A DNA stretch of 64,000 nt from Chlorokybus atmophyticus (GCA_009103225.1 RHPI01000026.1:753103-817102), one strand, 5' to 3'; positions 10,566 through 45,806 are shown, counted from the first letter of the stretch. A program made the numbers and translations. Notes: generated by a model from the sequence alone, not told the origin.

Positions 10566-12823
10566 CTACGCGTCACTCAGATTAAGCGATGCCACATCTG
10601 CAGCCACAACATCGGTCCGATACGTGTCTTGCAAGCCGAGCGGGAAGAACAAGTCGCGCAGCTTGCGTGCAACGCGTCGCAGCTGGTCGCTGTCTATCCT
10701 GCTCAAGACCTTGTCCTCAAATAAGAGTGTCATAGCCGTCCATTTGCTGTCAATGGCCGAGGGGAAGCCGAAGGGCGCCTTGCGCCAATGCAATCCACCT
10801 TGCGTCGCCCAATACAGAAATACATACAAGGCCGATTCGAGCTCGGAAGAAACTGTTTGCGGCCTTTTTTGCAACGTCGTGATGGCCATGAACAAAGGCG
10901 TCCCCGTTGCAAACCCGTCGGTCGCTGCCTGCAAACATATGCACATATCTTCATGCAATGTACAACAAAGCAAATTGACAACATGCAAGTATATCACATG
11001 GGCTTGTATGACGGTACCTGACTCAAAAGACGAGCTTCACCGAAGTCGATGAGCATGATGCTCCCATCAGCTCTGCCAACCACGTTGAATGCAGAGATAT
11101 CTCCGTGAAGATAGCCTCTGTCTGCAATTGCACCGATAGCAGCACATAGCTGCTCGAATGCTCTCACAATCATCAATGGCTCTTGTGGTGAAAAAAGGTC
11201 GCCAACGGGCTGCATGACCAAATAATGCTTTTCATCGTCATTGTCGACTGCCATGCCCACGAGGTTGACAACGCTGTCGACCTCGGTCAATGCTACCAAA
11301 GCTTGTCTCTGTCAAGCAGCCACATGTTGACATACAGCACATTCAACAACACTGTCCGTGCGCTACCACACCTTGATGCCCGTTTGCTGTCATTGTATGC
11401 ATGTAAGCAATTGCACACCTCACGTTCCTGTTGCTCCGCGTTGTGGCTGTGCTTGGCAATGGCCCAGCCATGGTCAGGTTGTAGCTCGCCGCGATAGACG
11501 TAGGAGATGAGCGGTGATAGCATGCCTTCATCCTTGCTGCTTGACTCCTTCATGAGAAACAGCTTCTCCAGAGATTTGCCATTATAATGCCCACTGTATA
11601 GTCGTAAAGGAGATGGTAGATATGGCCGCCTGTAACCCAAAGTCTCTGGTGCTGTACACCATAACCGAACCAGGGTCTGCAGAGCTGGAGACCTCCGGTC
11701 CAAAGTAAACGCCTGTTGTGGGGTACAGCGAATAGTCCCGAGCCTGTCCAAGCTCCACAGTTGCAAGCAATCGATACCACCCGTGATTGCCACCCACTCA
11801 TTGCGGGCAGGCTGCTCCCTCTTTAGATCCTCCAAGAGCACCTTTATCTGATACAAGGCTTCACGTTGCAACGTCGTTTCCCGAAGGGCTTTCTTGACCT
11901 CAACATACCACACAATGTGTGGAGCTGTTGCATAGGCAGAGTCCGTAATTGTAAGATCTGGTTTTCGGTGTAGTCCGGGAACGCCGGTTGCATGTGTATC
12001 CTGCACATGCAACCGGCGTTCCTGCCCTCCTCCGGGCCTCACGGACTGCAACTTGGACAGGATTGTGTAATAAAGCTTTTGCACAGGCTCTTCGAGTTGT
12101 TGCTGGCTGGCCTCAAGAAAACGCGCTTGAACGTCTTGTGCTTGAAGGAGAGATGTCAACACGTCTTCTTCAACGTAGGCCAACTTTGCAAGCAACTCTT
12201 CAGTGTAAATAGCAGACTCCATGAGCTTTTTGCCGGCTTCTACTGGCTGCGTGACTGTCGTAGCAAGCCTGTCATAGCGCGCCAATCGTTCTTCAAGCCG
12301 CTCCAGGTCCTCTAGTGTGACAGGTCTGGCAGATGGCGCACCTGCACGAATGCACCCGCCGGAGTCAGCACAAAGTACAAGACAGTCAAACGTGCACACT
12401 CGTGCGAACAAGCCATTGAGACATCGAGGGAGGTGGGGAGCAAATAGGGTGCTGTGCGATGCAGCTCCTGGAGCATACTTGTTTGCAAGACACCCATGGC
12501 CAAGGCAGACACAGTATGTCTTGTAAAGCACACATGGCCAAGGCCAGGGCGAGTAGTAAGACCTCACCTGGGCCAGCAAGAGGGGCTTGCTGCTGTGGCA
12601 CAACAGCGATTTCATACTCAGCGCCAGCATTGAATGTGATATCGGAAAGCATCTCCAACTGACCCGAGCAATGGCCGACGCGCACGAAGACTTCACCAAG
12701 CTTCACAAAAAACTGCGAGGCCTGGTAAGCTTCCAGCACGAAAGCAACTTTCACCCGTCCTTCCAGCAGCAAAAACGATGTTTGGCTGCCACCCGCCTTG
12801 GTAAAGTGCACAAGCGGATTCAT
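10566..12823 (-). CDS. CR (Crinkler/RHS-type) protein copy 1: header A, coiled-coil linker, PD-(D/E)xK REase, FunK1-like kinase; ~610 aa, intact
   Basis: Exons 12823-12568, 12341-11419, 11308-11018 and 10928-10566 have GT-AG ends and sum to a multiple of 3. REase motif KPDLTITD...YVEVKK and QPAR...LWSLDRLG. Kinase motifs AIAKHS, HGDISAFNV, LIDFG, TGTPLFMA, ELESALYV. Confidence 0.85.
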
Positions 12824-13623
12824 TGAAATGGGTTGCTTATCACCCCTCTGGCCCTGTTGCTGAGCACATAAGAGCAGAAACACAATACCACTTGAGTGAC
12901 AAGCTGTATCAAGATGGCTGAGCGCGGCGTTGAGCGGGAGACAGGATGGCTGGCAGACCACATGACAGTACCAAGCAACACAGAGAGAGACAGAGCGAGA
13001 GAGAGCTGATACCTGCCGCTATGGGATGATCCGCCGCAGTCGCAGCAGGCAGAGGGGAGCCTCCAGCAGCAGCGCTTGCAGCGGCCAGGCCGGGTGGTCA
13101 ATGCAGGAAAAAGGAGGGCGGCACTGTCCTGCGTCCCGCGCCCGGGCTGCCCGCTGGTCGTTCTCCCTATCTCCAGCGGCTGTGACCAACGCCGTCGTCG
13201 TTGCCTTGCCCCGCCGCAAGCCGTGCAAGCCTCTTCGGATCCTTCTTCTGCCCGTGGTCACCCAAAAACCTGTTGACAAGCATTGCCACTTAACACACAG
13301 TGACAGATTGCGCATTTGACAGGTTCATGTGTTTAGTGCCGTGCAAAGCCACTGCGCTTGTTTGGGCGTTATCAGCTTGTTTCATGACAAGCAGTGTGTC
13401 CTGTGAATGCAAATGCGCAGCAAGTGTGCATGTGCGGGCATAAACAGCTTCTAAGACATGGAGTACGTTCTGTTTGTTGCATTGCACAGCTACTGCGCAG
13501 TGCAGGCATGAACAGCTGTTTCTAGAAGCAAGCTGTCCTATACGAAAACATGACATCTCTCCCGCTCAAGGGAGTTGAGCAAAAGAGACATGACGAGAGG
13601 CTCGGAGGCACACGACATGTGAG

Positions 13624-14066
<443 letters not shown>

Positions 14067-15176
14067 CTACCTGCCACCGTGCGATGAGGTAAAGGTGGGG
14101 GGGCTGATCCGCCATCGCCGCAGGCACAGGGGACCCTCAGGCAGCAGCGCTTGTATGCGGAGGACGGCCGGCGTTATCCTCCCTCACCGCGCACAGAGGG
14201 CTGGCCGCTGGTCGTACCCTCACTCGCTTTCTCTCTGTCGGACTACCGTGCCGTCGTCGCCTTTGCCCCGCCGCCGCCGCCGTTGCCGCCGCCGTTGCGC
14301 CATTAACCTCTTCTCTCAGAGTTGACACGGCGACAGTGCTGCTTGCGTTGCTCTGTGCAATGATGTGTGCGGCAGCACGGAACGTTGTGGCATGTATAAG
14401 GGGTATGGTACTGTGCCAGCATGTATAGGGTACAAGTCGTATTCTACATTTGCAGACTGTGCGTGACGTGTCGAATGGTGCAGTGGCCAGCGACTAGCGC
14501 TGTAATGACACCCATGTACGGTTGTCTGTGGAAGAGTGCAAAGCATCGTGACTGGCAATGCTGCCTTGGCGAGCCCTTGGTGAGCTGAGCAACTACACGC
14601 ATGATTTTGCGCCGCGCTGGCTTGCTGTAAGATACTCAATGCAGCAAGGCATAGTTGTGACAGGTATGATCAAACCGCATTGTTCAGCGTCTGCTGCATG
14701 CCTGGATGGAGAGGGTGCACATGAGCTCATGCATGTGACCAGTGGACAGTATATGATACATGCGATGTGGAAGAGGAAGTGTATAAGAGATAGTACGCCA
14801 GGTTAGTAACATGCATGGTGACACACATATCATGCCCTGTCATGCACAACGTGCAGCATACAATACATGCAATGGCATGCCAATACTTTATATACCACCG
14901 GGCTGCTGCTAGCTCCTACCCAACTCACTAACCCCTACCCTGTTAGCTCACACAGCATGCATGTAGTCAAGTAGGTACCTGCCCACACAGGCGCCGTGCC
15001 TAAGCAGGTGCAAAAAATCATGGTGCAACATGCACTCGGCATTCCAACAGACACCACACATGCATGTCTATGATACCGTATGCATGCATGTGCAGAGTAC
15101 CACAACAGTACATTAGGGCAGTAACTGACCACACATGTGTGGCAAAAATGACATTCACAGTTTGCAGAACTCTACT

Positions 15177-17399
15177 TTACAAGGGCACTTGCGCACGCAA
15201 CTGCCGCCGATGCCACGCAACGACCTCAGCGTACTGCAAGTTGCCCTCAAAGATGTCGAGAGCGCTGCCCACATACACATCAACATGTCTAGTTTCGCAC
15301 ACGTGCATTCAATTGTACCCACCTTGTCTGATAAGCTCTCAAAGTATGACCAGTCTACTGCTGCACATTGCGCTTATGTCCGGTGCAGTAGTTGTCCGCC
15401 ACGACCACCTGATGCCCCGCCGCCATCAACCTGCTTTGCCATACAACATGAGAGTAAGTGAGGGAAGGAGGAGGAGGAGGGGGAGGAGGAGGGGGGCTTG
15501 CCTGTCAATGCATGACAAATACCATGCGACAGTACCCAGTTCTTGCTCCATGTCTTCGGCAGCTTTGGGCGCGTTGCCTCAAAAATAGTAGGTAGTTGTA
15601 CCTAAGCGAACCCTCAGCCGAAGCCAGCCTACCCTTTCCGCTCCTCCCCGAGGGACATGCATGCTTCTATTACAACGAGTGACCGAACAGATTCAACCCA
15701 CCACGCAGCGCCATTGAGCAAATTGATATGCGCTTATTTTATTGGATGTGTGCGTGGACATTGCAAACAACTTAACAAACCTAGCTCGCCTATGCGCTTC
15801 TTCCTCATGATCCGTTGAACCACATCGTACAAGCAAAACAGTTTGTAGTCTTCATCCCATAGCATCCTTACAAGCCTCGAACACAAGCTCTATTGAAAAG
15901 ACTGAAGGCGAGCATCACTAGTAGTACTAGGATATCAGCCATCACTTGCTTTGCCGCCGACGCCTAATGACCTCATAGCGACCGGCCTTTGCTGCTTTCT
16001 AACGAGGCAAAAGTTATGTGGTGGCACAGCTGGAAACGCAAGACATACCTGAGAAGGTAAGCGCATGCATGCCTCAGGCTGCTGCATGGCTGACGCAACC
16101 CTGTCATCCACAAGCTTCTTCGGTTTCCATCTGGCACTCGTGCTTGCGCGCCTTTTTGAGCGGTGTGCAAGCACTTGCTGCACACAACGATACCACAGTG
16201 CTAGCCACACATACCCTTCCGACAATAATGGTGCACTACGTAGTCATGTATCTATGTGGTCAAAGACACAACATACCCTAACTTCATCGTTTATGGACGC
16301 ATCACCATCGTGCTATAATGCAACGGTGTCAACAAGTGTAGCCCCTCCCACCTCATGTGTCACTCCTGGACTGAACTGTACCACAACTGCTTAAGGGATT
16401 GAACACGTTGCACAAACAGCAATACGTGCGCGTCGTGCTGCAGCGGTGAATGGTGCGAGATATGGTGCGGCGGTCTCGACTTTTCTGTGCATTGAGCGGA
16501 ACCGATGGATAGTGCTGTCGTTGATGCCGCTAGGGTACGGCGCTTTCGGGACGTGGAAGTTCTGAAAAGGAGGCAGCAGAGCTTGACAAACAATGTCTTT
16601 GGTTGGCAACTATTAACAAGTACAGGCGCGTGCACACCCTGTGCATGCATCGAGAATTGAACTCCAAACCGATGTCCATTGACTCTACTGCTTTGCAGGT
16701 AACAAATGACGCTCATTTGCACATTTATAGTTGGTAAATAACTAGCTGCATGCCGCCAGCCTTGCGTGTGTCACGATGTGTACAAATTGATGCAGAAAGC
16801 AGCTTTTGCAGCTTGCGTGCAGCATGCAGCTTGTGATAGCATGGCGTCACAAGTATGGTGCCAATTGTTGTTGGCAGCATGCAGCACACAAACTGCTTCC
16901 ACGCATATCTGGAGGACGGCTCATTCTTACACACCAGTTACTGGTCAAGACAATCGCGCAGTCTGCACACTCCTTGGCAACTCATTCCTTGCTGATCAAA
17001 CCCATGCACAGGCGCCGCACAACCGTTGACTGTCTTAAAGTTAAATGACAAGCAAATACTGCAAGACACAAGCTTGCCAAGAAGACCATGTTCCCTACAA
17101 GCTCGCAAAGGAGAAAAGCAAGTGTCCAAAGTTGTCGCATGCATGGCAAAGCAAACACAACCACACGGACTTGTCTTGGCAAAGAGCCTTGCCACGCGTG
17201 AGCAGAAATCAGCACACGCACGAGGGCAATATGCAGCACCTTATTGATGTGTTTGCTCCGATAGCGCTGCGCTTCATCTTCACACGCACCAGCGCCATGC
17301 GCCCGTCCTGCTGCTGCTGCTGCTCCTCCGGCTGCACAGCCGCCTCGCCTAGCCAACATGCGCATCATCCAAAGCCTTCTCAGAAGCCTGCGTAGCCAT
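15177..17399 (-). pseudogene. Chimeric pseudogene copy 1: IWR1/RDM4 exons 1-7, one UXS N-terminal exon, 3' half of the HISN3 last exon
   Basis: On the minus strand: MATQA...ALVRVKMKRSA (early stop), degenerate IWR1 exons, then LMAAGHQVVVADNYCTGHKRNVQQ* (UXS), then [28 protein letters not shown]...* (HISN3). Confidence 0.75.
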
Positions 17400-17478
17400 G
17401 CCTCCCCCTCCTCCGCCTCCGCTATGGTTTTCTGTGGAACTTTGCGGATGGCATCGAGTATATTGTTTGGTGGGCGCC

Positions 17479-19090
17479 ATGCTGGCGACTGGGAGTGAGG
17501 TGGCGGCGAGGGCGAGGGGGCTTCAGGCGGTCCGCCGACCGCCAGATGGCCTGACAGCTGCACCTGGCCGCTTGCTGCGCAGCCCATGTCCCTAAAGCCA
17601 GCCTGCTGCTGCCGCTGCTGCGTGGGCAACAACCGGTGCGTTTGCCTGTTATGCCTGTGATGCCTGTTGTGCTAAGGTAGCCTGTGCCCTTTGTGCTCGT
17701 GCATGCATGAGTGTGGCGTGTAGCGCTGTTACGGTGCCGTCTAGGAGGGTTGTTTTCAGGCTACTGCACAGCTTGTCTGCGTGAGCGAATGTGTTTCATG
17801 CGATTCAAGCTTTGTGCAGCTATCATACAATCAACGTACGGCGTCGAGAACTAGGGTTTCCACGCTGAGTGCAAGTCTAACTTGCAGCGCAGGACAAGTA
17901 CAGTCATTACCAATCCAACCATGGCTATGTTCAGAACTTGCATGCAGTGACATGCTAGGCCAACGCGATATAAGCGTCACCACCCAACCAATAATAACAA
18001 GCAGCATGGCCGCTACAATGCATAAGTTCAGCTACTACTACTACTTTGTCAGTCAAACGTTCCACCCAAGCAACCGCAGCTAACAAGCGAGTGGACCCGC
18101 TGCGCGCTCCTTGCGGGTATTGGCAAGTGCAACGAGGGAACCGTGCATGGGCGTGTGTGCGCGCATTTATGTGTACTCTTGTGCATGCATCGGGCTGGCT
18201 GAGTGCTTACTCTTTTACTCTTCCATGAAAGGAGCGGTGGCCACTAGAAGTTTCACGAGCGGTACGCGATCAATGCGGTTTTGCCCCTGTATTGGTGTCC
18301 ATGATGTACGTGCTGGCCACATGTGAGGGAACCGTGCATGGGCGTGTGTGCGCGCATTCATGTGTACTCTTGTGCATGCATCGGGCTGGCTGAGTGCTTA
18401 CTCTTTTACTCTTCCATGAAAGGAGCGGTGGCCACTAGAAATTTCACGAGCGGTACGCGATTAATGCGGTTTCGCCCCTGTATTGGTGTCCATGATGTAC
18501 GTGCTGGCCACATGTTATCTCTTGGCGTGGGCATTCAACAGCACGTGAGCAACATGTCCCACTGTGGCAGGGCAAAGTCAAGTAGATAGTTGAAGTCATG
18601 GTGGGATGTGCCTCAGGAGGGGAGGGCGACTGAAGGGCCCCGGGGTTGAGAACTACGTGCCACAGGCGTAGAGAACTGCATGTCTGAGCTGTCCGTAAAG
18701 GATGTACCAAGGAGACACTCTCCCTGGCGGGCACGTCATTATGCTGGGCTCAATCGTACCCAACCAGGCTGCAGCGTTTGAGACAATCACGTCGTATCGT
18801 GGTGGGTGATCAAACGTGGAAAATAAATTTGCTTTTTTTTTGGTTTTTAGGATCAAGGCAGCTCTTAACACGATACTCATACATGGGGCGTGCAAGTTGG
18901 AGGCGGGGTTCACGCCAGGCAATGCGGCGCTCTACTTGGATGCCTGAGCCAGCCACGTTATTGTCACCTCAGTATGCGCATTCGTGCGTGTGTGCGCATG
19001 CTGGTGTAAATGCGCGTGTGTGCGCACGCGAGCAAGTGAGTGAGTGTGCATGCGCATGTGTGTTGGAGCCTGGATGTGGTTCTGGTGAAG
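17479..19090 (+). pseudogene. HISN3: 5' half of HISN3, degenerate duplicate
   Basis: Homologous to 49,561-48,150: transit-peptide exon, (V)[17 protein letters not shown] and QVGGG exons, with substitutions and indels. Confidence 0.8.
18134..18515 (+). repeat. 191-bp tandem duplication containing the HISN3 RFRPCIDIH-type exon
   Basis: Units 18134-18324 and 18325-18515 are near-identical. Confidence 0.9.
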
Positions 19091-19758
19091 CTCAATGCCC
19101 CATCATATCATCGTGTGCAGCTGTAACGATGCTCGTGCTCACACACACAGCACACAAGTCATACAACACATGTGTGCAGCTGAGCACAATCTTCACACCG
19201 GAACCTTGCCTTCACTCGCGCACGCACGCACGCGTCGAGCGCGCACACGCACACGAACACTACTACTTCTCACGCCAAGCAAGAACGCAGCAGTGTGCCT
19301 TGGACCACAACTCCCTCAAGCATGCACCAGCATACTCATAGCAGAGAGCAGAAAACAAAGTTGGTTGCATTACACAGGGTTTTTCTATTTATACAAGCAC
19401 TAGGAAGAAATAGCCTAATTAACAGGCATTTCATTATTCACTACCAAATCTAAAGGCAGGTCCAAGTGCAGGCTCCCCGCCACGCGCGTTGGGCCTTCGG
19501 CGGCTGTGTGGCTGTGCAGTCCGCGTCACCTGGCACTGCACAGCGCGTGTCCAGTCAGCGGCTGTGTCACAACCGCGTGGCAGGTGGGTCACGTCGCCGA
19601 ATTAGCTGCTGTCGAGCAGGTCGCAGGCGAGTCGCGCGCGGCAGCAGGGGCAGGCGCCACATGGGCTTAATAAAGCTCATAAAAGCCCTCATCAAGCCAG
19701 CAAAAAAGGCAAAATAAGTACTTTATGTACAATAAAATACAAAAAATGCCCCAGGCTG

Positions 19759-22700
19759 TTACACCCCTTCCCCCCCGGGGGAGCTTCGTCCTCGAAGCTG
19801 ACGACTGCCTCCTCTGGCCTTGTAGTCTTGCAAGACCTGTTTGGCATTGGTAAAGCTCTCCTCGGGCTCGTATGTCGCCTCGTGCATTGGATAGCCACGC
19901 CACTTCACCAAATACTTGCGCACGCCTCGGATCAGCTTGTCCGTGACAATTGCTTCCACTTCCCACTCAGCCTCACCTTCACGAACCACATCTGGAGGCG
20001 GACGAGCTGGTGGCTCCCCTCGATAACCTTTAAGAAGCGAGACATGAAAAACAGGGTGCACATGCATGGTATTGGGCAGCTCCAGCTTGTAGGCCACCTT
20101 CGAGATGACCTTGATCACTTTAAAGGGCCCAAACCATCGCTCACTCAGCTTGCGCACCCCCGTGACCAGCTGCACATGCTTGGTTGAAAGCATTACAAGG
20201 TCACCCTCCTCGAACACAACATCCTTGCGACGCGCATCGGCGTATTGCTTTTGCCGGTTTTGCGCCACAAGCAGAGCCTCTCGAGCTGCCTTGGTAATGT
20301 CGGCACACCTTTCAAGAAAGCCGTCCACGGCCTCCACATCTGAACTTTGCATGCTAGGCACCCACGCCGTCAATGGCGTCAATGGATGTTGCCCATAGTT
20401 CATAAGGAAAGGTGTCACGCCCGTGCTTGCACTCTTGTGGTTGTTAATGGTGAACTCAATCAGCTCCAGCATGTCTCCCCAATTGTCTTGGCGGCTGTTC
20501 ACATAGCACCGTAGCATGTCTTCGATGACGCGGTTGGCGCGCTCCGTTTGGCCGTCCGTTTCAGGGTGGTACGCGGTGCTGAACTTCAAGCTCGTGCCTA
20601 GAGTTGCGTGGAGAGCTCTCCAAAAGTTGCCAGTAAACCGCGGGTCTCTATCATTGATAATGCTTCTTGGAAGGCCATGAGAGCGCACCACATGCTTGAT
20701 GAACAACTTGGCAGCCTCGGGAGCTGTGCAAGTCTCCGTACATGGCGCCAATCGCACCATTTTGCTAGTCTTGTCCACAAACACCAAGATAGCATCATGC
20801 CCTTCACGTGTCCGTGGCAGCCCCGTGATGAAGTCAAGAGTAACTTGCTCCCACTTCGTCAAAGGTATCGGCAATGGTTGGAGCAGCCCACTGGCGCGTT
20901 GATTGCTCGCCTTCACCCTTTGACAAGTGTCGCACAATGCCACATAGTCCTTAACGTCACGATGCATCTCCGACCAGAAAAATTTCTGTTTCAACAAGGC
21001 TAGTGTCCGTTCCAGCCCTTGATGACCAGCCATTGGCACATCATGCGCTTCCTTCATCAATGCCACGCGCATGTGCGCAATGTTGGGTATGTACATGCGA
21101 TCGCCATGCCATAGCAGCCCGTCCTTCAATGCCCAAAGGCCGCTATGTTCAGTCCCATTCTCCAACGCCTCAATGGTCTTCTCCCCCACCGCGTCCTCAT
21201 GCAATAAGGCACGGATCTGGTCAAGCCACTTGGGCTGCACTTGCACCACCGTTTCAAGCGCGTTGAGTTGACGGCTTAATGCGTCCGCAACCTTATTTGA
21301 AGAGCCCGGCTTGTACTTCACTTCAAAGTCGAAGAGTTGGAAGAACTCGAGCCAACGAGCTTGCCGCCGTGAGAGGTGAGGCTGCGTTTGAAGGTACCTT
21401 AATGGCGAGTGGTCCGTCTCAAGTGTGAACCGCTTGCCTTCAAGGAAACAACGCCATTGCCGTAGCGCTAGCACCTGCGCCAGCAATTCCTTCTCATGAA
21501 CGGGGTAGTTGAGCTCAGCCCCGCTCATCTTCTTGCTGAAATAGGCCACCGGTTGCAAGCCGTTGCCGTGATCCTGCTGCAAAACAGCCCCAATAGCCTT
21601 GTCGGACGCATCACACGCCACCACAAAGGGCAATTGCATGTTGGGATGCAGCAGCACGGGAGCCGATGTCAGGGCCTCTTTCAAGTCGGAAAATGCCTTT
21701 GTTGCAGCCTCCGACCAGCTCCAAGCCACCCCCTTCCTCAACAATGCCGTCAATGGTGCCGCCAAGTGCGAAAAGCCCTTTACAAACTTACGATAGTAGC
21801 CGGCAAGCCCTAGGAACGACATGACACCCTTCACGTCCTTCGGGGCAGCCCAATCGCGCACCGCGGCAAGCTTGCTTGGATCTGCCTTGATTCCTTGCTT
21901 GGATACAATGTGGCCAATGTATTCTACCTCTTCAAGCAAGAAGCGGCTTGTTGAGCTGAGCAAACAACTTGTGTGTACGTAAACGCTGCATCACCTCGTG
22001 TAGCAATGCCCCGTGCTCTCTCTTGTTCTTTGTGTACACAAGGATGTCGTCGAGGTACACTAGCACGCCCTTGCCAATCAGATCAGCAAAGACCTCATTC
22101 ATCAAGGTTTGAAAGGTTGCCGGAGCATTTGTCATGCCAAAGGACATCACCAACCACTCATAGTGGCCATAGCGAGTGTTGAAAGCCGTCTTCTCAACGT
22201 CTTCGGGCGCAACACGGATCTGATGGTAGCCACCAGCTAGGTCCAAGCTTGAGAAGAACTCAGCACCCTCGAGCTGCTCCAACAACTCATCAATGCGTGG
22301 CAAAGGGAACACATTCTTCTTGGTGATGTTGTTGAGTGGCCGATAGTCGATGCACATGCGCAAGGCTCCGCTCTTCTTACGTACAAATAGGATAGGTGCA
22401 CCGTAAGGAGACTTGCTGTGCCTGATGTACCCACGTTGTAGAAGGTCCTCGACTTGGCTCCTCGCCTCTTCGAGTTCAGCCGGAGACAACTTGTACACCG
22501 GTCGGTACGGCGGCTTGTGCACGCCCTCTATCAGTTCCACACGGTGATCAACACTTCGCGTGGGTGGCAGACCAGCTGGTAGCCCATCCACCATGACGTC
22601 TTTGAACTCTTCAAGCAACCTCTGCACCTCGGGGTCCTTCGAACTCTCCGAACCAGTGCCGACCAGCTCCAAGTCCGACTTGGGAGGTGTCTCACGCACC

Positions 22701-22774
22701 ATGCACAGCCATGCATCCTTCACATTGATCCCGGACCAGATCTGCTCCATCTTGGTCTTAGAAACTTGTGACAC
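19759..22774 (-). pseudogene. Gypsy pol: RT, RNase H, integrase, chromodomain; frameshifted in RT
   Basis: MCIDYR, YHQIR, YLDDIL, CDASDKAIGAVL, GHQG...CDTCQ, DFITGLP and WEVEAIV...YLVKWRGY...TYEPE. The two ORFs overlap at ~21,945, where the expected K-C-R codons lack 2 nt. Confidence 0.93.
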
Positions 22775-22851
22775 CAGCTCTGGAACCCCTCCCCTTGAGC
22801 TAGAAGCATGTTGTGGTGCAGCTTGCTGGCGCGCCGTCGTGTCGTGCGCGT

Positions 22852-28952: not shown

Positions 28953-29132
<180 letters not shown>

Positions 29133-30284: not shown

Positions 30285-30790
<506 letters not shown>

Positions 30791-30841
30791 ATTGTTTTGG
30801 TGCTCTTCAACAGGACTTTGGGGGTGATGCGACGCGCGTGA

Positions 30842-34649: not shown

Positions 34650-36309
34650 TCACTTTGTCAAGCCGAGCCGCTCCCTGAACTCATCAGCCATTCGCACAAG
34701 TCCTCCTCGAAGAGGCACCTGGAGTCGCAATGCCACACACGTTCAACAATAAGTGACTAACAAGCAGAGGTTGAACTAGGCTTGGCTACATGCACCCTCC
34801 AGTGCCCACAACATGGATGCAAGTCCGTTTACGACTGGATTCCGTTGTAGAATGGGGTGCACACACACACACACACACCCCTGAACATGCATGCATGCAT
34901 ACACTCACACACGCAAGCGTACATGCGCACATGTGCACGCGCACGCGCACACCAACCCACGCGCAACTGGAAACGCACCATCGGTTCCCAGCCGAGGGCT
35001 GTTGTGGCTTTGGATATGTTGGGCTTGCGCTGCATCGGATCGTCCGGCGTGTTCTCCTTCACTTCAACTGTTGCGTTGGGTTCCACAAGCTGCCAACACC
35101 GCACACAAGCACGTGTTGGTACTGGCTGCACATGCGTTGAATATATGAAGCGCATTCGAGTCCCAAATGCTACACATCACACTGCTTTCATGGCAGCGAG
35201 ACCATCACATCAGTCACCTCCTTGACCAGGCTCGCCAGCTCGTTGATGGTGAACTCCCCTGAAGAAAAACACGCAAGAAACCCGCTCGCATGTTGGCATG
35301 GGCTATTTGTGCGCAAGCGCAACACACGAAAATAGCTCCGGACTCTGGTTGGACTGTGCTGTAAGTGAATTTACAACAATGCGGCATTCAGTGTGGCGAG
35401 TGTGTTCACACACCTGGATTGCCGAGGTTGACAAGACCAATCTCGTCGCTCTCCATCAACCTTATCAGGCCCTCAACCTGGCCCCGCCACAGTTGCATTG
35501 GTGTAAGGAGCAGAAATAAAACACGCGCTGCATGAACCCACATGACGAGTAGTTGCATGCATACGGCGTGGACTAGCACTTTGGTGGAGCACAAGGAGCA
35601 CATTGAAAGCCGCACCTGCGCGCATGCATATGCACACAGGTGCGCACACGCTCACCAAGTCGGATACATAAGAAGCTGCGCGTTTGCGTCCCGGGCTTAT
35701 ACACAGTCATGGGCTCCCCTCTGAGGTACAGTACACACACACATGTGTCTCGTGACCATCGCACGCGCGAAAGAACAGGGGACAAAACAACGACTAACCA
35801 CATAAACTAGCATTGATGTAAGCAAGGAATGGTATCAACCTACCTCAGAGCCTGGCAGACAAAGTTGCTGACAACGCGGCCATTCGAGATGTGCATGCGC
35901 GGGCGGTACGTGTTGAAGATGCGGGCCACTCTAATATATGCCGTCATTATGCCACATACCAGAGATTAGGCATATAAGCTTCATGATGATGAGGCAACAC
36001 ATGCTTGTCGGAACGGTTGATGTGTGAGAGGGTTGTTGGGCTCACTGACCTACATTGTGTTGGCGGTGGTAATCGAACATGAGGGTCTCGGCTAAGCGCT
36101 TGCCTTCATCGTAACAACTCCTCACACCTTGAATGTTACAACAAATTTAAAAACAAATGTAAACACCCATACCCGTGCACGTATGCATGCACATGCGGAC
36201 GTACACACGCGCACACAAAGAACAAAGAGGGTCGTCCTTCATGGATGAATGCGTTGATACCTATAGGGTTGACGTGGCCCCAGTAGCTCTCTGGTTGCGG
36301 ATGCACCTG
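34650..36309 (-). pseudogene. UXS: 3' half of UXS with introns, frameshifted
   Basis: Exons [52 protein letters not shown] (YGP to YRP), GEPMTV...RSF (2-nt deletion), VEGLIRLMESDEIG, EFTINELA, NTPDDPMQRKP and the last exon. Confidence 0.88.
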
Positions 36310-36334
36310 ATGACCGGCAGGTTCAGGCAGGCTT

Positions 36335-36399
36335 AGGCAGCCTCAGGCACCCGTTGGTCCCTCAGTCATTAGTCGGACACCGTGTAAAATTTGCGACGA
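36335..36399 (-). repeat. Right arm of the inverted repeat bracketing the central block
   Basis: Reverse complement starts TCGTCGCAAATTTTACACGGTG. Confidence 0.8.
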
Positions 36400-36477
36400 C
36401 TACAGCAGTACAGCAGGGCAAAAGACTGACTACACATGTGTAGCAAGAATGACATTCACAGTCTGCAGAACTCTACT

Positions 36478-38200
36478 TTACGCGGGCACTTGCGCACGCA
36501 ACGATCTCAGCGTACTGCAAGTTGCCCCCAACGATGTGGAGAGCGCTGCCCACAAACACATCAACATGTCTAGTTTCGCACACGTGGACTCAGTTGTACC
36601 CACAATGTTTGATAAGTTAAAAATATGACCAGTCTACTGCTGCACACGCTTATGTCTGGTGCAATAGTTGGCCGCCACGACAACCTGATGCCCCGCCGCC
36701 ATCAACCTGCTTTGCCACACATCATGAGAATAAGTGAGGGAAGGAGGAGGAGGAGGGGGAGGAGGAGGGGGGCTTGCCTGTCAATGCATGACAGATACCA
36801 TGCGACAGTACCCAGCTCTTGCTCCATGTCTACGGCAGCTTCGGGCGCGTGTTATCTCGTAAGCGGTGGATAGTTGCACCTAGGCGAGCCCAGCCAAAGC
36901 CAGCCTGCCCTTTCCGCTCCTCCCTCAGAGACATGCATGCTTCATGTTACAACTAGTGACCGAGCGGGTTCAACCCACCACCCCGCAATGCCATTGAGCA
37001 AGTTGATATGCGCTTATTTCATTGAATGTGTGCGTGAGCAAATTGCGAACAACTCAACAAACCTAGCTCGCCTATGCGCTTCTTCCTCATCATCCGTTGA
37101 ACCACATTGTACAAGCAAAACAGTTTGTAGTCTTCATCCCATAGCATCCTTGAAAGCCTCGAACACAAGCTCTGTCAAAAAGACTGAAGGCGAGCATCAC
37201 CAATAGTACGGAGAGATCAGCCATCACTTGCTTTGCCGCCGACGCATGATGACCTCATAGCGACCGGCCTTTTCTGCTTTCTATCGAAGCAAAAGTTATG
37301 TGGTGGCACAGCTTGAAACGCAAGACATACTTAAGAAGGTAAGCGCATGCATACCTCAGGCTGCTGCATAGCTGACGCAACCCTGTCATCCACAAGCTTC
37401 TTCGGTTTCCATCTGGCACTCATGCTTGCGCGCCTTTTTGAGCGTTGTGCAACCACTTGCTGCACACAACGATACCACAGTGTTAGCCACACATACCCTT
37501 CTAGCAATAATGGTGCACTACGTAGTTATGTATCTATGTGGTGAAAGACACAGCATACCCTGACTTCATCGGTTATGGACGCATCACCATCGTGCTGTAA
37601 TGCAACGGTGTCAACAACCGTAGCCCCTCCTACCTCTTGTGTCACTCCTGGACCACAACTGCTTAAGAGATTGAACACGTTGCACAAACAGCAATACGTG
37701 CGCATCGTGCTGCAGCGGTAAATGGTGCGAGTAATGGTACGGTCGCGACTTTTCTATGCGTTGAGCAGAACCAATGGATAGTGCTGTCGTTGATGCCGCT
37801 TAGGTAAGGTGCCTTCGAGACGTGGAAGTTTGCAAAAAGGAGGCAGCAGAGCTTGACAAACAACGTCTTTTGTTGGCTACCATTAACAAGTACAGGCGCG
37901 CGTGCACACCCTTGTGCATGCATCTAGAATTGAACTCCAAACAAATGTCCATTGACTGTACTGCTTTGCATGTAACAAATGACCCTCATTTGCACATTGA
38001 TAGTTGGTAAACAACTAGCTGCATGCCGCCAGCCTTGCATGTCACGCTGTGTACAAGTTGATGCAGAAAGCAGCTTTTGCACCTGGTGACAACATGGCGT
38101 CAAAAATATGGTGCCAATGGTTGTTGACAGCATGCAGCGCACAAACTGCTTCCACGCTTATTCGGAGGACGGCTCATTCTTACACACCAGTTATTGGTTA
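36478..38200 (-). pseudogene. Chimeric pseudogene copy 3: IWR1 exons 2-7, UXS exon, HISN3 last-exon half; 5' truncated
   Basis: Colinear with 15,177-16,990, with additional small deletions. Confidence 0.72.
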
Positions 38201-38290
38201 TTGGAAGACAATTGCGCAGTGTTCACACTCCTTAGTACTGCCATGTTCAAAAACTGCATGTACAGTGGTAATGATTGTACTTGTCCTACG

Positions 38291-40197
38291 CAGAACTTGC
38301 CACGCGCACAAGGTTTGCAAGCCTGCATGTGCGGGCACGCGTGTGCGCGTGCCCGCGTGTGCATATGCAAGCGTCTGTGTGCATGTGATCATGAACTAGT
38401 CCATGCGCGCATGTGTGTGTGCGACATACTGCAAGCGCGAAGTGCATGATGTGTTGTGATGATACTGACTCGGTCGTTAGGTGCATCCGCAACCAGAGAG
38501 CTACTGGGGCCACATCAACCCTTGTAGGTATCAACGTGCTATAGCATCCATAAGCATGCGTCCATAAGCATGTATGTTCACACAATCACATGATTGTTGT
38601 GCACACGCGTGTGTGCCCGTGCACAACTAGGCGTGCATGTGTTGTTGACTTCATGTGTTCATGCACTTCCGCATGTGCGAGCGTGCATGCATGCATACAC
38701 ATGTATGTGTGCATAAATGTGGTTTTGTGCCATTCTAAGGTGTGAGGAGTCGTCACGATGAAGGCAAGCGCATTGCCGAGACTCTCAGATTCAACTACCA
38801 CTGCCAACGCAATGTAGGTCAGTGAATCCAACCCTCACGCACATCACCCGTTCCTACAAGCATGTGTTGCCACATCATCAAGTTTATATGCCTAATCTCC
38901 TGGTATGTGGCATAGTGACGAGAGATATTAGAGTGGCCCGCATCTTCAACACGTACGGCCCGCGCATGCACATCTCGGATGGCCGCGTTGTTAGCAACTT
39001 TGTCTGCCAGGCTCTGAGGTAGGTTGATACCACTCCTTGCTTACATCAATGCTAGTTTATGTGGTTAGTCGTTGTTTTGTCCCCTGTTCTTTCGCGTGCG
39101 ATGGTCACGAGACACATGTGTGTGTGTACTGTACCTCAGAGGGGAGCCCATGACTGTGCATAAGCCCGGGACGCAATCGCGCAGCTTCTGCTATGTATCC
39201 GACTTGGTGAGCATGTGCGCACCTGTGTGCATATGCATGCGCGCAGTTGCAGCTTTCAATGTGTTCCTTGTGCTCCACCCAAGTGCTAGTCCACGCCGTA
39301 TGCATGCAACTACTCGTCATGTGGGCTCATGCAACGCGTGTTTTATTGCTGCTCCCTACACCAATGCAACTGTGGCAAGGCCAGGTTGAGGGCCTGATAA
39401 GGTTGATGGAGAGCGACGAGATAGGTCCTGTCAACCTCGGCAATCCAGGTGTGTGAACACACTCGCCACACTGAATGCCGCGTTGTTTTTGATTCACTTA
39501 CAGCACAGTCCAACCAAAGTCCGGAGCTGTTTTCATGTGTTGCGCTTGCGCACAAATACCTTATGCCAACATGCGAGCGGGTTTCTTGCGTGCTTTTCTT
39601 CAGGGGAGTTCACCATCAACGAGCTGGCGAGCCTGGTCAAGGAGGTGACTGATGTGATGGTCTCGCTGCCATGAAAGCAGTGTGATGTGTAGCATTTGGG
39701 ACTCGAATGCGCTTCATATATTCAACGCATGTGCAGCCAGTACCAACACGTGCTTGTGTGCGGTGTTGGCAGCTTGTGGAACCCAACGCAACGGTTGAAG
39801 TCAAGGAGAATACGCCAGACGATCCGATGCAGCGCAAGCCCGAGATATCCAAAGCCAAAACGGCTTCGGCTGGGAACCAATGGTGCGTTTCCAGTTGCGC
39901 GTGGGTTGGTGTGCGCGTGCACATGTGCGCGTGTACGCTTGCGTGTGTGAGTGTATGCATGCATGCATGTTCAGGTGTGTGTGTGCACCCCATTCCACAA
40001 CGGTATCTAGTCGTAAACGGACTTGCATCCATGTTGTGGGCACTGGAGGAGGGTGCATGTAGCCAAGCCTAGTTCAACCTCTGCTTGTTGGTCACTTGTG
40101 TTGAACGCGCATGGCATTGCCACTCCAGGTGCCTCTGCGAGGAGGACTTGTGCGAATGGCTGATGAGTTCAGGGAGCGGCTCGGCTTGACAAAGTGA
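38291..40197 (+). pseudogene. UXS: 3' half of UXS with introns, degenerate
   Basis: [85 protein letters not shown]; frameshift near 39,865; last exon ends 40,197. Confidence 0.88.
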
Positions 40198-41638
40198 GCA
40201 CGCTTGCGCAAGGTTGTGGCACACGAACACGCACCCCATGAACACGTGCCCACCACACATTGGCAACAGGTGTGATCAACAAAGTTGGCGAGCGTGTGCA
40301 TCTTATGAACAGGGCTTGAACACGTCAACCATGATTGTCCTGCCCTTCAGCGTGTGTGTTTTACCATCTATGTATCTTGTCTTGTCTTGTTATGTTATGT
40401 AACTTGTCTTGCACCTGCTATCACCTTCTATAGCACAATGCGGTGGCTGGAAGTTGCTGGAAGATGTTGTTCTGGTAGCTGGGCATCGCGTGTTGCTGAT
40501 TGGAAAAGAGCAGCGATCGGTACTCACCGGATACCGATGATGTGAATTCACACGTGGAAACTTGCATGACTGCAGTACATATGTGCATTCGTTGGGTTGA
40601 GTTGGATGAACTTGTTGAACTGTTTGCCGTTTTACGTGCTCAGTCGTGCTGATGCTGATAACAGTACCGTATACTGTTTACTCATGACCAGTTGAGGTGA
40701 CTATAGCTGTGTGGCAGGCTATGCACAAGCGGGCCTGTGCGTGCGTGCGTGCGTGCGTGCAGATGAGGCTGTGCACGCTACGGCCTTCGTCTCCTACCTT
40801 TGTGATTTCATCGATGGCTCGACTGTGTCTCTAACATTGACATTGGAGTGCACATGGATGCATTTGTAAATGTCCGTTGCTCGCTTACTTGGAGTAGAAC
40901 ATAAAGTACACGCACGATACACCGCACTGACTCAGCAATTCTACATCCTACATCTAACACAGCACACCACACCAAACAGTCAGACCACTCTCAGGCAGAC
41001 ATCATCGTTCGCAAGCACTGCATAGAGCATATTGCGAGAGAGTGTGGGGCGGCGATGGAGGAGGGAGAGAAGTGACAAAGAGTCCTGGGTTTGCGCATGT
41101 AGGATTGTGGGAGATGAAAGATTGACAAGCTCGTCGTGTGTACATGTATTGACCTGTTTGACTGGCATGCATGCATGCATGCATGACAAACAGGGGGTGG
41201 TGAGGTAGTGGTAGTAGTGCTAGTACTAGCTATTCCATAGTGAGATAGGCAGATATAAATGTTCATAGCCCGGTGGCTGACTACTTAAACGATACTACAG
41301 ATAATGCAGAACTAGCTGAGGTACATGCCAAGCCAACTTTGCAAGCAACAACAAGTCTAATGCTTGACATTTTTGTATGTATGTGTGCTGCCAGCATGGT
41401 GTGAGTGTCGAGGCGGATGCCGCATATGTTGAGCTTTTGGGGATGGTGTTGGGTGCGTGTGCGTGTGGTGGTGCGTGTGCTTTGTGTTGATACGCATGCT
41501 AGATGTTGCCAATCGAACACTTGCACGGTCATCATAACAATGAGAGAAAGGTGCTGCAAGCATGATGATGATATGGTGGAGATCTGCGCGCCATGTGAGT
41601 GCGGCCTAACGCATGCATATGCGTGAACACACTTGCAT

Positions 41639-42969
41639 AGGCTTTCCAACAAGTGCAACACAATGTAAGGCACCAGCCAGCACACCAGCCAGCACACCAA
41701 CAGGCACACCAGCAAGGACTGAATTACAAGGGCAAGGGCAAGGCTATGTGCACTAGCTACGTGCGTATGCTGGTGGTGGCGGGCGGAGAGGTGGGGCGGG
41801 GCAGTAGCAGCACAGCAGGTGTAAGGCAAGGCAAGGCAGGGCAGACCTGAGCAACAGCGGGGCTGGTGTCAGCGTAGTTGTAGAAGCGACCAGCAGGTAG
41901 CAGCAGCAGCAGCAGGCAAGGGAGGTTAGGCGAGGGGGTGAGCGGGATGCTGTGTTGTGCTGTGCGTGAGGGGCGCAGCAGGCCGGGCGGCTAGGTTATG
42001 GCGTGCTGGTCTTTACAGCCGCTTGTTGTAACACCCGCCGCCAGCAGGAGCAGTAGCGATACAATGGCTGGCCCAACGGACACTTTGCTGAGTCAGATGA
42101 GACACAGGCATTCTGAGCGACAGCACTTGACATATCACGTTAGTGCACTGTCAGCTCAGTAGTCAGTCAATTAGCACAGCAGTCAGCATAGCAGGCAGTT
42201 AATCACTTAGCAAGTAGTCAATGGCAAAATTGCAATCACTCACAAGCTGACGTCAAATGCATGCATGCGCGGGCAGACACTCTGCTCCCCACACATGCGT
42301 AACCACTTACCTCACTTACCTCACTCACCTAGGCTTCGGACTTGCACTTGTTGGCCACTCGCACGTAGAGCTGCTGGTATGTCATGTCGTACACCTTGCC
42401 CGGCATCCTGTACATCTTGCCTTGCAGCTTCCCCAACAGCTCTTGCAAGTGGTATCCTTGTGCCACCATGTCCCGCAAAAGCTGCACCATTTCCCACATA
42501 AAGTGTTCTCGCAAAATATAAATGCGCACAAACTGTGACACGACCACGCCCAACTTGGCCGACTTAGAGATCAGACTGTCTGGGTGTGGTGCTCTATGTC
42601 TTGGCAAGTATCTGAACGGAGCTGTATTCAGTTTGTTGTACACACGTGTGCACAAGCCAAGTTGTGGTGTTTGAAAAATCATCAAGTCCAAGAAAGGCAC
42701 GGTCACTCCCTGAGCTGTCTGAGACAGAGTGAGCATGTGCTGCGGGTAGAGTCCTCCACCCGGAGCACTTGCCGCTCCACTGGCTTCCAATCGGTCTGTG
42801 ACATATCGCAGCCGGCTGGTTCATGCACGTGCAGTAGCTACGTGCATGCAATGCTACTAGCCCCGCACCTAACACAAGACAATACAAGACAATACAAGGC
42901 AATACCACACAGCACTCTCACAAGCACGCACCCACGCACTGACACCACAAGCCTAGGAGCTGCATGCAG
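41639..42969 (-). mobile_element. 5'-truncated Penelope-like retroelement fragment (RT C-terminus and thumb)
   Basis: Absent from the paralogous site near 10,050. Flanked by TTGCAT at 41633-41638 and 42970-42975. Exon 42739-42329 encodes VPFLDLMI...TRVYNK...RYLP...HP...K.GVVVSQFVRI...F...E...L...GY, then a stop. Confidence 0.78.
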
Positions 42970-43511
42970 TTGCATCTTTTGTGCACACACAGCGCAAGCA
43001 GCTTGAATCTTCACCGGCAACACAAGCAATGAAAGGATGCGCTAAATGCAAAGGCTGCCAGCTAGGCCTGACAGTTATAGCCACGCTTTGCATAGCATTC
43101 AATGCATGCACACACTGCAGAGTGCAATGCATTCTTGATTATGCAGACAGCGCAGATCATAGGTTGCCAATTCCTTGCATGCTGGGCACGTTAACAGCAA
43201 TTATATGGCTTGTTGGCCCACTTTGCTTTGTCACCACTAGGTAGAAACCAGACGCAGACATGTGCAGTCGCTATACTGTCTGCAACATAAATACATATTG
43301 GGCAATGCTGACACACAAGCTGGACATACGCACCCGTGCACACAACAGCACGTTATTTATCATGTACGCATGCACGAAAGACAATAGCGCATGATGCAAG
43401 ACAACTTGCCCACACGCGGACAGTATGCATGTATTGCTAGCTATACCACAAGAGCTAACTCAACGAAAGCAAATTGCGCTCGTTTAACCTGCAACTGCAA
43501 GCTGGTCGCAA

Positions 43512-45758
43512 CTACGCGTCACTCAGATTAAGTAATGCCACATCTGCAGACACAACATCGGTCCGATACGTGTCTTGCAAGCCGAGCGGGAAGAACAAGT
43601 CGCGCAGCTTGCGTGCAACACGTCGCAGCTGGTCGCTGTCTATCCTGCTCAAGACCTTGTCCTCAAATAGGAGTGTCATAGCCGTCCATTTGCTGTCAAT
43701 GGCGGAGGGGTAGCCGAGGGGCGCCTTGCGCCAATGCAAACCACCTTGCGTCGCCCAATACAGAAATACATACAAGGCTGATTCGAGCTCGGAAGAAACC
43801 GTTTGCGGCCTTTTTTGCAACGTCGTGATTGCCATGAACAAAGGTGTCCCCGTTGCAAACCCGTCGGTCGCTGCCTGCAAACATATACACATATCTTCAT
43901 GCAATGTACAACAAAGCAAAATGACAACATGCAAGTATATCACATGGGCTTGTATAACGGTACCTGACTCAAAAGACGAGCTTCACCGAAGTCGATGAGC
44001 ATGATGCTCCCATCAGCTCTGCCAACCACGTTGAATGCAGAGATATCTCCATGAAGATAGCCTCTGTCAGCAATTGCACCGATAGCAGCACATAGCTGCT
44101 CAAATGCTCTCACAATCATCAATGGCTCTTGTGGTGAAAAAAGGTCGCCAACGGGCTGCATGACCAAATAATGCTTTTCATCGTTGTCGACTGCCATGCC
44201 CACGAGGTTGACAACGCTGTCGACCTCGGTCAGTACTACCAAAGCTTGTCTCTGTCAAGCAGCCACATGTTGACATACAGCACATTCAACAGCTCTGTCC
44301 ATGCGCTACCACACCTTGATTTATGCCCGTTTGTTGTCAATGTATCCATGTAAGCAATTACACACCTCACGTTCCTGTCGCTCCGCGTTGTGGCTGTGCT
44401 TGGCAATGGCCCAGCCATGGTCAGGTTGTAGCTCGCCGCGATAGACGTAGGAGATATGCGGTGATAGCACGCCTTCATCCTTGCTGCTCGACTCCTTCAT
44501 GAGAAACAGCTTCTCCAGAGATTTGCCACTATAATGCCCACTATATAGCCGTAAAGGAGATGGTAGATGTGGCCGCCTGTAACCCAGAGTCTCAGGTGCT
44601 GTACACCACAACCGAACCAGGGTCTGCAGAGCTGGAGACCTCCGGTCCAAAGTAAACGCCTGTTGTGGGGTACAGCGAATAGTCCCGAGCCTGTCCAAGC
44701 TCCACAATTGCAAGCAATCGATACCACCCGTGATTGCCACCCACTCATTGCGGGCAGGCTGCTCCCTCTTTAGATCCTCCAAGTGCACCTTTATTTGATA
44801 CAAGGCTTCACGTTGCAACGTAGTTTGCCGAAGAGCTTTCTTGAGCTCAACGTACCACACAATGTGTGGAGCTGTTGCATAGGCAGAGTCCGTAATTGTA
44901 AGATCTGGTTTTCGGCGTAATCCGGGAACGCCGGTTGCATGTGTATCCTGCACATGCAACTGCCCGCCTGCTGGCCTCACGGACTGCAACTTGGACAGGA
45001 TTGTGTAATAAAGCTTTTGCACAGGCTCTTCGAGTTGTTGCTGGCTGGCCTCAAGAAAACGGGCTTGAACGTCTTGTGCTTGAAGGAGAGATGTCAACAC
45101 GTCTTCTTCAACGTAGGCCAACTTTGCAAGCAACTCTTCAGTGTAAATAGCAGACTCCATGAGCTTTTTGCCTGCTTCTACTGGCTGCGTGACTGTCGTA
45201 GCACGCCCGTCATTGCGCGCCAATTGTTCAAGCCGCTCCAGCCGGTCCTCTAGTGTGACAGGTCTGGCAGATGGCGCACCTGCACGAATGCACCCGCCCG
45301 AGTCAGCACAAAGTACAAGACAGTCAAGCGTGCACACTTGTGCGAACAAGCCATTGAGACATCGAGGGAGGTGGGGAGCAAATAGGGTGCTGTGCGATGC
45401 AGCTCCTGGAGCATACTCGTTTGCAAGACAGCCATGGCCAAGGCAGACACTGTATGCCTTGTCAAGCGCACATGGCCAAGGCCAAGACGACTAGCAAGAC
45501 CTCACCTGGGCCAGAAACAGGGGCTTGCTGCCGTGGCACAATAGTGATCTCATACTCAGCGCCAGCTTCATAAGTGCCATTGGAGTAACGCTCAAACTGA
45601 CCCGCGGCAGGCCCAACAGGCACGAAGTCATCACCATGCTTGACAGAGAATTGCGATGCCTGGAAGGTGTCGAGCACGGCAGCCACATCAACCCTGCCTT
45701 CAAACAGATAGAAGGCTTTCCGGCGTTCACCTAACTTGAAATACACTAGCAAAGCCAT
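43512..45758 (-). CDS. CR protein copy 3: header B, linker like copy 1, more diverged REase-kinase; ~605 aa, intact
   Basis: Exons 45758-45506, 45279-44366, 44251-43964 and 43874-43512, GT-AG and in frame. All indels relative to copies 1 and 2 are multiples of 3. Confidence 0.85.
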
Positions 45759-45806
45759 TCACGCGCGTCGCATCACCTTCAAAGTCCTGTTGTAGAGCAC
45801 CGAAAC

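Follow-up and report, generated by a model that had tools for sequence, protein, structure and literature searches.

The green alga Chlorokybus atmophyticus carries, within a 64,000-nucleotide stretch of its scaffold 57 (GCA_009103225.1, RHPI01000026.1:753103-817102; hereafter the window, in whose coordinates all positions are given), three paralogous genes for proteins that combine a predicted ubiquitin-like head, a helical linker, a putative nuclease from the superfamily of restriction endonucleases (REases) and a protein kinase. We refer to these genes as copies 1, 2 and 3. As read from the sequence, they are confirmed to form a real block mosaic that arose by recombination among paralogues, with different parts of the gene grouping the three copies in different ways. 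The explanation that we favour is a four-gene family of the Crinkler/RHS-type (CR) REase-plus-kinase kind, the segments of which would have been exchanged by gene conversion and the products of which may act in conflict or defence. We put the probability of this explanation as a whole at roughly 60%. Its structural and evolutionary description, taken separately, is held with distinctly more confidence.

Copy 1 (10566-12823, minus strand), copy 2 (30842-33120, plus strand, 617 amino acids) and copy 3 (43512-45758, minus strand, 605 amino acids) correspond to the JGI Chlat1 models 7190 (P0004), 7191 (P0001) and 7192 (P0002), respectively. Copy 1 has a head of type A, copies 2 and 3 have heads of type B. 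The initial annotation of this DNA had described three intact genes in what looked like a photosynthetic green alga, and it was right on both counts: the organism belongs to the Streptophyta, and each gene consists of four exons without stop codons or frameshifts. The exons, established by tblastn and a splice check, lie at 12823-12568, 12341-11419, 11308-11018 and 10928-10566 on the minus strand in copy 1, at 30842-31094, 31321-32267, 32378-32668 and 32758-33120 on the plus strand in copy 2, and at 45758-45506, 45279-44366, 44251-43964 and 43874-43512 on the minus strand in copy 3. They are separated by canonical GT-AG introns of 226, 110/114 and 89 nucleotides, at positions common to all three genes. 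The products agree with the three JGI models residue for residue (EukProt/JGI Chlat1/7191 contains the exon-2 frame of copy 2 at 100% identity, and 7192 is the counterpart of copy 3). For copy 1 the JGI model contains 35 extra amino acids, contributed by an exon at 12963-12889 and a 35-nucleotide intron; this extension is probably an over-prediction, since the other three paralogues begin at the head's own methionine. The fourth paralogue, JGI 7188 (P0003), lies on the same scaffold outside the window, and its best matches in the window are 92-97% identical per exon. The 90% cluster containing copies 2 and 3 also includes 7190 (copy 1) and 7188. Comparisons that include 7188 were made at the protein level, while copies 1-3 were compared as DNA as well. 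The JGI models served for analyses of full-length proteins, and all other searches took one exon at a time.

The mosaic structure was read from site patterns in a three-way alignment of copies 1-3. Upstream of the gene and over its first 70 or so codons there are 72 variable sites, 64 of which unite copies 2 and 3 against copy 1. The linker groups the copies differently, in that 24 sites and a 24-nucleotide indel set copy 2 apart from copies 1 and 3. Beginning at 31431 of copy 2 and continuing as far as the stop codon, copies 1 and 2 stand together against copy 3 at 51 sites, and 5 sites show another pattern. Downstream of the stop codon some 430 bp are missing from copy 2, so that copies 1 and 3 are once more the similar pair. 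MaxChi placed the first breakpoint at 31055/31058 of copy 2, equivalent to about 12607 in copy 1 (permutation p <= 1e-4). In the ubiquitin-like fold this point is located within the final strand, shortly ahead of a VVP motif, and it agrees with the earlier proposal of an identity switch at AGAEYEI and a crossover near 12.63 kb. The longest concordant runs of variable sites are 21, 17 and 11 (p <= 2e-4). When 7188 was added, the quartet counts in the head were 25:0:0 in favour of pairing copy 1 with 7188 and copy 2 with copy 3. Site patterns, MaxChi, runs and quartet counts thus agree on a block mosaic created by recombination between paralogues.

The identities of the individual blocks tell the same story as had been noticed by eye. 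Over residues 1-70, the heads of copies 1 and 2 are 54% identical (about 50% had been estimated), and those of copies 2 and 3 are 94% identical. The linkers of copies 1 and 3 are 85% identical, and the body of copy 3 is 3-4% diverged from those of copies 1 and 2, so that copy 3 indeed combines the head of copy 2 and the linker type of copy 1 with a more diverged body. Between copies 1 and 2 we counted 2 amino acid and 9 nucleotide differences in the 1.69 kb that separate the linker's end from the stop codon (0.5% divergence), and about two amino acid differences had been reported originally. Across all four paralogues the bodies are 96-100% identical and star-like in their relationships.

One of the blocks is a patch of about 320 bp in copy 1 (12607-12928, minus strand), which comprises the 5' leader together with roughly the first 72 codons, those of head A. 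It is 58-72% identical to copies 2 and 3, or unalignable with them, whereas both of its borders are 89-100% identical. Such a patch could also be accounted for without any exchange, if head A had changed where it stands in copy 1, once the triplication had taken place, because diversifying selection drove it fast. The heads of conflict proteins are often fast-evolving, and the patch is only some 320 bp long, which would suit this idea. The substitution rates do not. Heads A and B are separated by a synonymous divergence (dS) of 0.91-1.05 with a ratio of non-synonymous to synonymous change (dN/dS) of 0.34-0.36, i.e., synonymous change is saturated (dS about 1) at a dN/dS of about 0.35. The two B heads, of copies 2 and 3, differ by a dS of 0.086 (dN/dS 0.30), the body of copy 3 differs from those of copies 1 and 2 by a dS of 0.08-0.12 (dN/dS 0.06-0.20), and dS between the copy 1 and copy 2 bodies is 0-0.036. 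The divergence of the copy 3 body equals that of the non-coding flanks, and the triplication is about 0.09 substitutions per site old. With a head dS of about 1 set against this divergence of body and flanks, the split between the heads is about ten times older than the triplication. Moreover, the non-coding leader within the patch is also unalignable, the borders are abrupt, and 7188 possesses head A at 92% identity. We therefore regard in-place divergence as extremely improbable, and rejected it on account of the saturated dS. An old head split, together with the presence of type A in 7188, argues instead for ectopic exchange or gene conversion. All dN/dS ratios indicate that every part of the gene is under purifying selection.

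A second event can be recognized in the bodies of copies 1 and 2. The candidate conversion tract has its copy-1 arm at 10566-12255 (minus strand) and its copy-2 arm at 31431-33120, and the 9 differences in its 1.69 kb include those in the introns; the flanks of the tract are 89-91% identical. Intron 2 is identical in the two copies and intron 3 nearly so, and for this reason the identity of the bodies cannot be the result of selection on the protein alone. Three exchanges can thus be read on top of the triplication: the bodies of copies 1 and 2, which are head-to-head arms about 18 kb apart, have been homogenized up to the stop codon, introns included; copy 1 carries the head-A patch of about 320 bp; and the copy 2 linker has been rebuilt around a 21-nucleotide tandem repeat, either by local remodelling or by import from an unseen paralogue. 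In the mechanism that we propose, the exchanges would be non-allelic gene conversions between paralogues. The conversion of the bodies would be recent, and separate from the import of the patch, for which ectopic exchange with a paralogue of type A, for example 7188, may be responsible.

The head, encoded by exon 1 (residues 1-84; 30842-31094 on the plus strand in copy 2, 12568-12823 and 45506-45758 on the minus strand in copies 1 and 3), was modelled with AlphaFold2 from a four-sequence alignment. The model has a predicted local distance difference test score (pLDDT) of 80.8 and the order beta-beta-alpha-beta-beta...beta. In a Foldseek search of the PDB, nearly all of the top 50 matches had a beta-grasp fold, ubiquitin-like or otherwise, and a few were unrelated; they include ubiquilin, ubiquitin, BAG6, RBD and PB1, with a best E of 2e-3, probabilities up to 1.0 and template modelling (TM) scores of 0.5-0.6. 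The initial annotation had suggested modelling the headers for a beta-grasp fold, and by the model and the list of matches the head is a ubiquitin-like beta-grasp domain. Types A and B are homologous (56-61% identical, E 1e-25). The "swapped headers" described at the outset are thus correct in so far as there are two types of head, but the two are diverged versions of one domain, and not separate families.

The linker, which begins exon 2 (31321-31430 on the plus strand in copy 2, about 12341-12256 and about 45279-45194 on the minus strand in copies 1 and 3), is predicted to be one long helix, spanning residues 6-35 of the exon-2 model. In copy 2 it contains about 2.5 copies of the 21-nucleotide repeat, each encoding one heptad, and it differs by 24 nucleotides in length from the linkers of copies 1 and 3.

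The exon-2 model (AlphaFold2, pLDDT 89) continues from the linker helix into an alpha-beta-beta-beta-alpha-beta core and ends in the first strands of the kinase. The core belongs to the middle domain, which in copy 2 occupies 31455-32087 on the plus strand (approximately residues 130-340 of P0001) and which likely has a PD-(D/E)xK (REase-fold) nuclease fold, as judged from this model and from its conserved residues. In P0001 numbering these are E176, D207, D221, E240-x-K242, Q257, Q269 and R272, and each signature residue is kept in 26-34 of the aligned sequences from 34 relatives. T208, D221, E240 and Q269 are invariant among the 15 full-length relatives, and the signature E...D...ExK...Q, which 29-34 of 33-34 relatives retain, sits on the right strands of the predicted core. 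The weak fold matches comprise DrdV, BpuSI, NucC and TT1808 in the PDB, and UL24-type proteins, Cas4 and the N-terminal domains of type I R proteins in a library of viral structures. Pfam scans of single exons and of full proteins gave no match to a nuclease family, only a sub-threshold match of DUF6826 over the nuclease core.

The kinase domain, of the FunK1/CK1-like type, is encoded in copy 2 by the last part of exon 2 together with exons 3 and 4 (32088-33117, plus strand, a span that includes introns 2 and 3). P0001 and P0004 match the FunK1 family PF17667 with 58.5-59.6 bits, the cut-off being 24.1; the domain also matches Pfam Pkinase (31.9 bits) and PDB kinases, and scans of single exons gave only weak kinase matches. 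A family profile compared with PDB sequences returned kinases alone, the closest of which are CK1, TTBK and VRK. The conserved kinase residues are E400, H468-G-D470, N475 and D488-F-G, with E400, D470, N475 and D488 invariant. The catalytic residues originally named for both enzymes are thus present in the copies and conserved in the relatives. The region preceding the kinase weakly matches the N-terminal part of PF17667 (E 0.19), which hints that the nuclease-kinase pair is common to that family. In the viral structure library, the exon-2 model of copy 2 (31323-32267) is best matched by a DUF5898 protein of Pandoravirus (302 columns, E 3e-3, probability 0.98). Judged by this structural match, the nuclease-kinase pair may have a relative in giant viruses.

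Relatives outside Chlorokybus were sought by a HMMER scan of 1.84 billion representatives, which gave 40 matches below 1e-10. The top non-Chlorokybus match, in Coccomyxa, is 41% identical across residues 98-602. The relatives that carry a name belong to trebouxiophyte algae of the genera Coccomyxa, Trebouxia, Myrmecia and Symbiochloris, and are annotated at source as hypothetical proteins or fungal-type protein kinases. Of 34 relatives, 13 match PF17667. Literature searches tying FunK1 to Crinklers or to restriction nucleases found nothing, nor did a search for papers that name Chlorokybus alongside Crinkler.

What the proteins do can be approached by analogy with CR effectors. It is possible, and we advance it only tentatively, that they are conflict or defence effectors, in which the nuclease would attack nucleic acid, the kinase would regulate or complement it, and head and linker would serve for binding or assembly. 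Two head specificities would then be maintained in parallel. A more specific proposal, which we consider improbable, is that the two ancient, lineage-specific heads provide alternative recognition or targeting in a self/non-self or anti-parasite system, while the body is continually homogenized and exchange takes place at the same point as in oomycete Crinklers. The view of an "actively shuffling polymorphic toxin or defence locus", put forward in the initial annotation, holds as regards exchange among paralogues. The activity, however, amounts to one recent tract that copies 1 and 2 share in an assembly of short reads, and the role is a matter of interpretation. With one C-terminal module, and heads found on no other protein in 5.8 billion clusters, the combinatorial logic of polymorphic toxins is not seen.

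A number of observations weigh against the favoured explanation, and one of them concerns the mosaic itself. The published assembly was made from short reads (SOAPdenovo with k=85, GapCloser, Pilon). Such reads cannot safely phase paralogues that are identical over hundreds of bases, so that neither the pairing of head, linker and body nor the figure of 99.5% identity for copies 1 and 2 is secure. Taken further, this leads to the view that the family is real and its fine mosaic a product of short-read assembly, gap filling and polishing. The stretches of identity between the copies far exceed the k-mer of that pipeline, single-N scars lie in the microsatellites by each gene, and a scaffold gap parts copy 1 from copies 2 and 3. 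On the other hand, 9 copy-specific differences persist where copies 1 and 2 share their tract, the genes themselves contain no Ns, and head A occurs twice on the same type of body (copy 1 and 7188). We consider such an artefact unlikely, though it deserves to be taken seriously. One result is robust under any phasing: there are two deep head classes, both represented by two versions, and the bodies that bear them are at least 96% identical.

The remaining adverse observations concern the nature of the protein. The fold matches of the middle domain to the PDB and to the viral structure library all have E > 1e-3, that is, they lie below significance. The Pfam Crinkler head PF20147 did not match the head alone (E <= 1) or the full proteins (E <= 0.1), nor any of the 34 relatives (E <= 0.01). 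Heads A and B each retrieved just the same two protein clusters, which correspond to the four paralogues, in a word-based search of 5.8 billion clusters with proteins of about 340-1080 amino acids. The N-termini of the relatives, those in Coccomyxa included, are unrelated to the Chlorokybus head, and comparison of the heads with 162 relatives and two Coccomyxa proteins by phmmer, BLAST and hhalign likewise produced no match. No signal peptide pointing to export is apparent; the predicted N-terminus of the protein is strand 1 of the head fold. Among 10 open reading frames (ORFs) in the repeat unit outside the gene, none matched Pfam and no immunity or partner gene was recognized, although a small or novel spliced gene could be missed; the JGI model numbers 7190-7192 run consecutively. 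Finally, the closest outside homologue, in Coccomyxa sp. Obi (AP024998.1, L001 10001-12959), is a single-copy gene that stands among housekeeping genes, its neighbours being Arf GTPase, cohesin-loader and NMO genes, and not in an array.

The last of these points, together with the naming of the relatives as fungal-type kinases, the missing partner gene and the purifying selection throughout, would fit FunK1-type kinases with an ordinary task in signalling or housekeeping and an N-terminal nuclease-like regulatory domain, duplicated by chance in a repeat-rich region and without any role in conflict. To this one may object that the catalytic residues of the nuclease are invariant or near-invariant even in distant relatives, that the architecture is that of CR effectors, and that the cluster is lineage-specific and has retained two old types of head. 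An ordinary kinase family is in our view about as improbable as the assembly artefact, and a family of CR-type proteins with exchanged segments remains the preferred reading.

The genes are embedded in a unit of 8-9 kb that self-BLAST revealed three times in alternating orientation, with non-coding flanks that are 86-91% identical. Unit 1 (9093-16975, gene on the minus strand) and unit 3 (38725-47512) have the same orientation; unit 2 (27108-36141) is inverted with respect to both, and stands head-to-head with the former and tail-to-tail with the latter. An extra copy of a far-upstream segment lies at 36399-38233, at the centre of the tail-to-tail pair of units 2 and 3; it is homologous to 15099-16975 and, inverted, to 27108-27962. 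Upstream of every copy there are (GA)n/(CT)n arrays, at 52-59 nucleotides from the ATG in copies 2 and 3 and at about 800 nucleotides in copy 1. These microsatellites, at 13621-14061 (copy 1), 30287-30783 and 28958-29132 (copy 2) and 45810-46274 (copy 3), contain one N each, and may be promoter elements, recombination sites or gap-filling scars. A segment upstream of copy 2 is tandemly duplicated (29133-29771 and 29794-30254, the second copy 70-74% identical); it is present once at copy 1 and absent at copy 3. A relic head-A exon upstream of copy 2 was considered and rejected, the stretch in question being a diverged duplicate of this upstream segment.

Between units 1 and 2 lies a long terminal repeat (LTR) retrotransposon of the Ty3/gypsy chromovirus type (19139-24353, minus strand), whose LTRs at 19139-19763 and 23729-24353 are 98.7% identical. 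Its pol region (19762-22774, minus strand) encodes reverse transcriptase, RNase H, integrase and a chromodomain, with one frame break. The assembly gap (22852-23728), located between copies 1 and 2, falls inside this element, and the second LTR begins at the first base after the gap. With pol to its left and the LTR directly to its right, the gap must hide the gag-protease part, for which the estimate of 877 bases looks short. One element in one orientation across the gap is an argument, short of proof, that the scaffold links copy 1 correctly with copies 2 and 3. Nearer the start of the window, a stretch of about 8.5 kb (625-9160) splits two pieces of the copy 1 downstream flank that adjoin in copies 2 and 3. 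On its minus strand, at 4371-4694, it contains a Transposase_21 (CACTA/En-Spm) fragment (E 2e-15); it also holds a further run of Ns, at 2644-2886, and is probably a DNA-transposon insertion. Of the 30 other ORFs in the window that were compared with Pfam, this CACTA transposase fragment was the only one to match. Minisatellites occur at 7058-7678, 8489-8688 and 18134-18515, with periods of 15/45/54 and 42/84 nucleotides and a 191-nucleotide unit present twice.

This neighbourhood raises the question of whether the gene might be cargo of a mobile element, the 8-9 kb unit being itself a transposable element or having been amplified by its neighbours, and the gene being selfish. A gypsy element does separate units 1 and 2, a CACTA transposase fragment does lie in the flank of copy 1, and there is a precedent in a Crinkler-like gene of fish that was reported to act selfishly (PMC12957317). 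Beyond the gene, however, no transposase, integrase or other domain was found in the unit. The units abut in alternating orientation, in a segmental or palindromic-like manner, both mobile elements interrupt the units instead of bounding them, and all four paralogues are found on a single scaffold. As no features of an element were seen in the unit, we rejected this idea; its probability is very low, if slightly above that of in-place divergence of the heads.

The favoured explanation would place the CR-type pairing of a ubiquitin-like head with REase and kinase in a basal streptophyte alga, and link it to a branch of the "fungal" FunK1 kinases that is green-algal and has gone unannotated. It would also provide a compact case, of four genes, in which the boundary of exchange lies at the end of the head, as reported in pathogen Crinklers. 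If long reads confirm the mosaic, the family would be a simple natural example of effectors that keep different heads on one enzymatic body. Should the two heads in fact serve in recognition, it would offer a free-living plant-lineage model for the diversification of CR effectors, in one of the earliest-branching streptophytes.

Four known systems invite comparison. Gene conversion from arm to arm is familiar from inverted duplications and palindromes, for instance in the ampliconic genes of sex chromosomes. Copies 1 and 2 resemble such cases in being inverted arms with gene bodies that are 99.5% identical, introns included, but their putative conversion is limited to about 1.7-2 kb of the gene, the other arm sequence being about 10% diverged. 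With bacterial polymorphic toxins (RHS, contact-dependent inhibition (CDI) systems) the family shares recombination at a domain boundary, which swaps modules among clustered paralogues. The RHS and CDI systems have a constant N-terminal part, variable toxin tips and cognate immunity genes, whereas in Chlorokybus the enzymatic body is constant (96-100% identical), the head and linker vary, and no immunity gene is recognizable. As regards FunK1 (PF17667), the Chlorokybus kinase passes the gathering threshold of the family. It differs in that the family is annotated as fungal and these proteins are green-algal (Chlorokybus, Coccomyxa, Trebouxia, Myrmecia, Symbiochloris), in that the strong match is limited to the C-lobe part of the model, and in that the ubiquitin-like head is extra.

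The closest parallel is with the CR effectors themselves, a class reportedly defined by Zhang et al. in 2016. It unites a ubiquitin-like header with a REase-plus-kinase C-terminus and includes CRN8 of Phytophthora (PMC5289972). In its REase-plus-kinase modules the REase is held responsible for toxicity, and the end of the CRN N-terminus (HVLVVVP) is a recombination hot spot (PMC5289972). The Chlorokybus proteins depart from this class in that their head neither matches the Pfam Crinkler model nor has sequence relatives beyond the four paralogues, in that the genes possess a single C-terminal module and two versions of one head, and in that the bearer is a free-living alga, so that no host is known. 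They agree with it in the order of predicted domains, set against the description in the review, from ubiquitin-like head through REase-superfamily nuclease to protein kinase. The CR-type architecture recognized by the initial annotation, with its likely nuclease, matches the published layout (PMC5289972), and the candidate "new system" reveals no new kind of system. Neither group appears to have a classical signal peptide, and both occur in lineage-specific clusters. The Chlorokybus breakpoint, at the end of the head before VVP, recalls the CRN hot spot; this is a resemblance and not a test.

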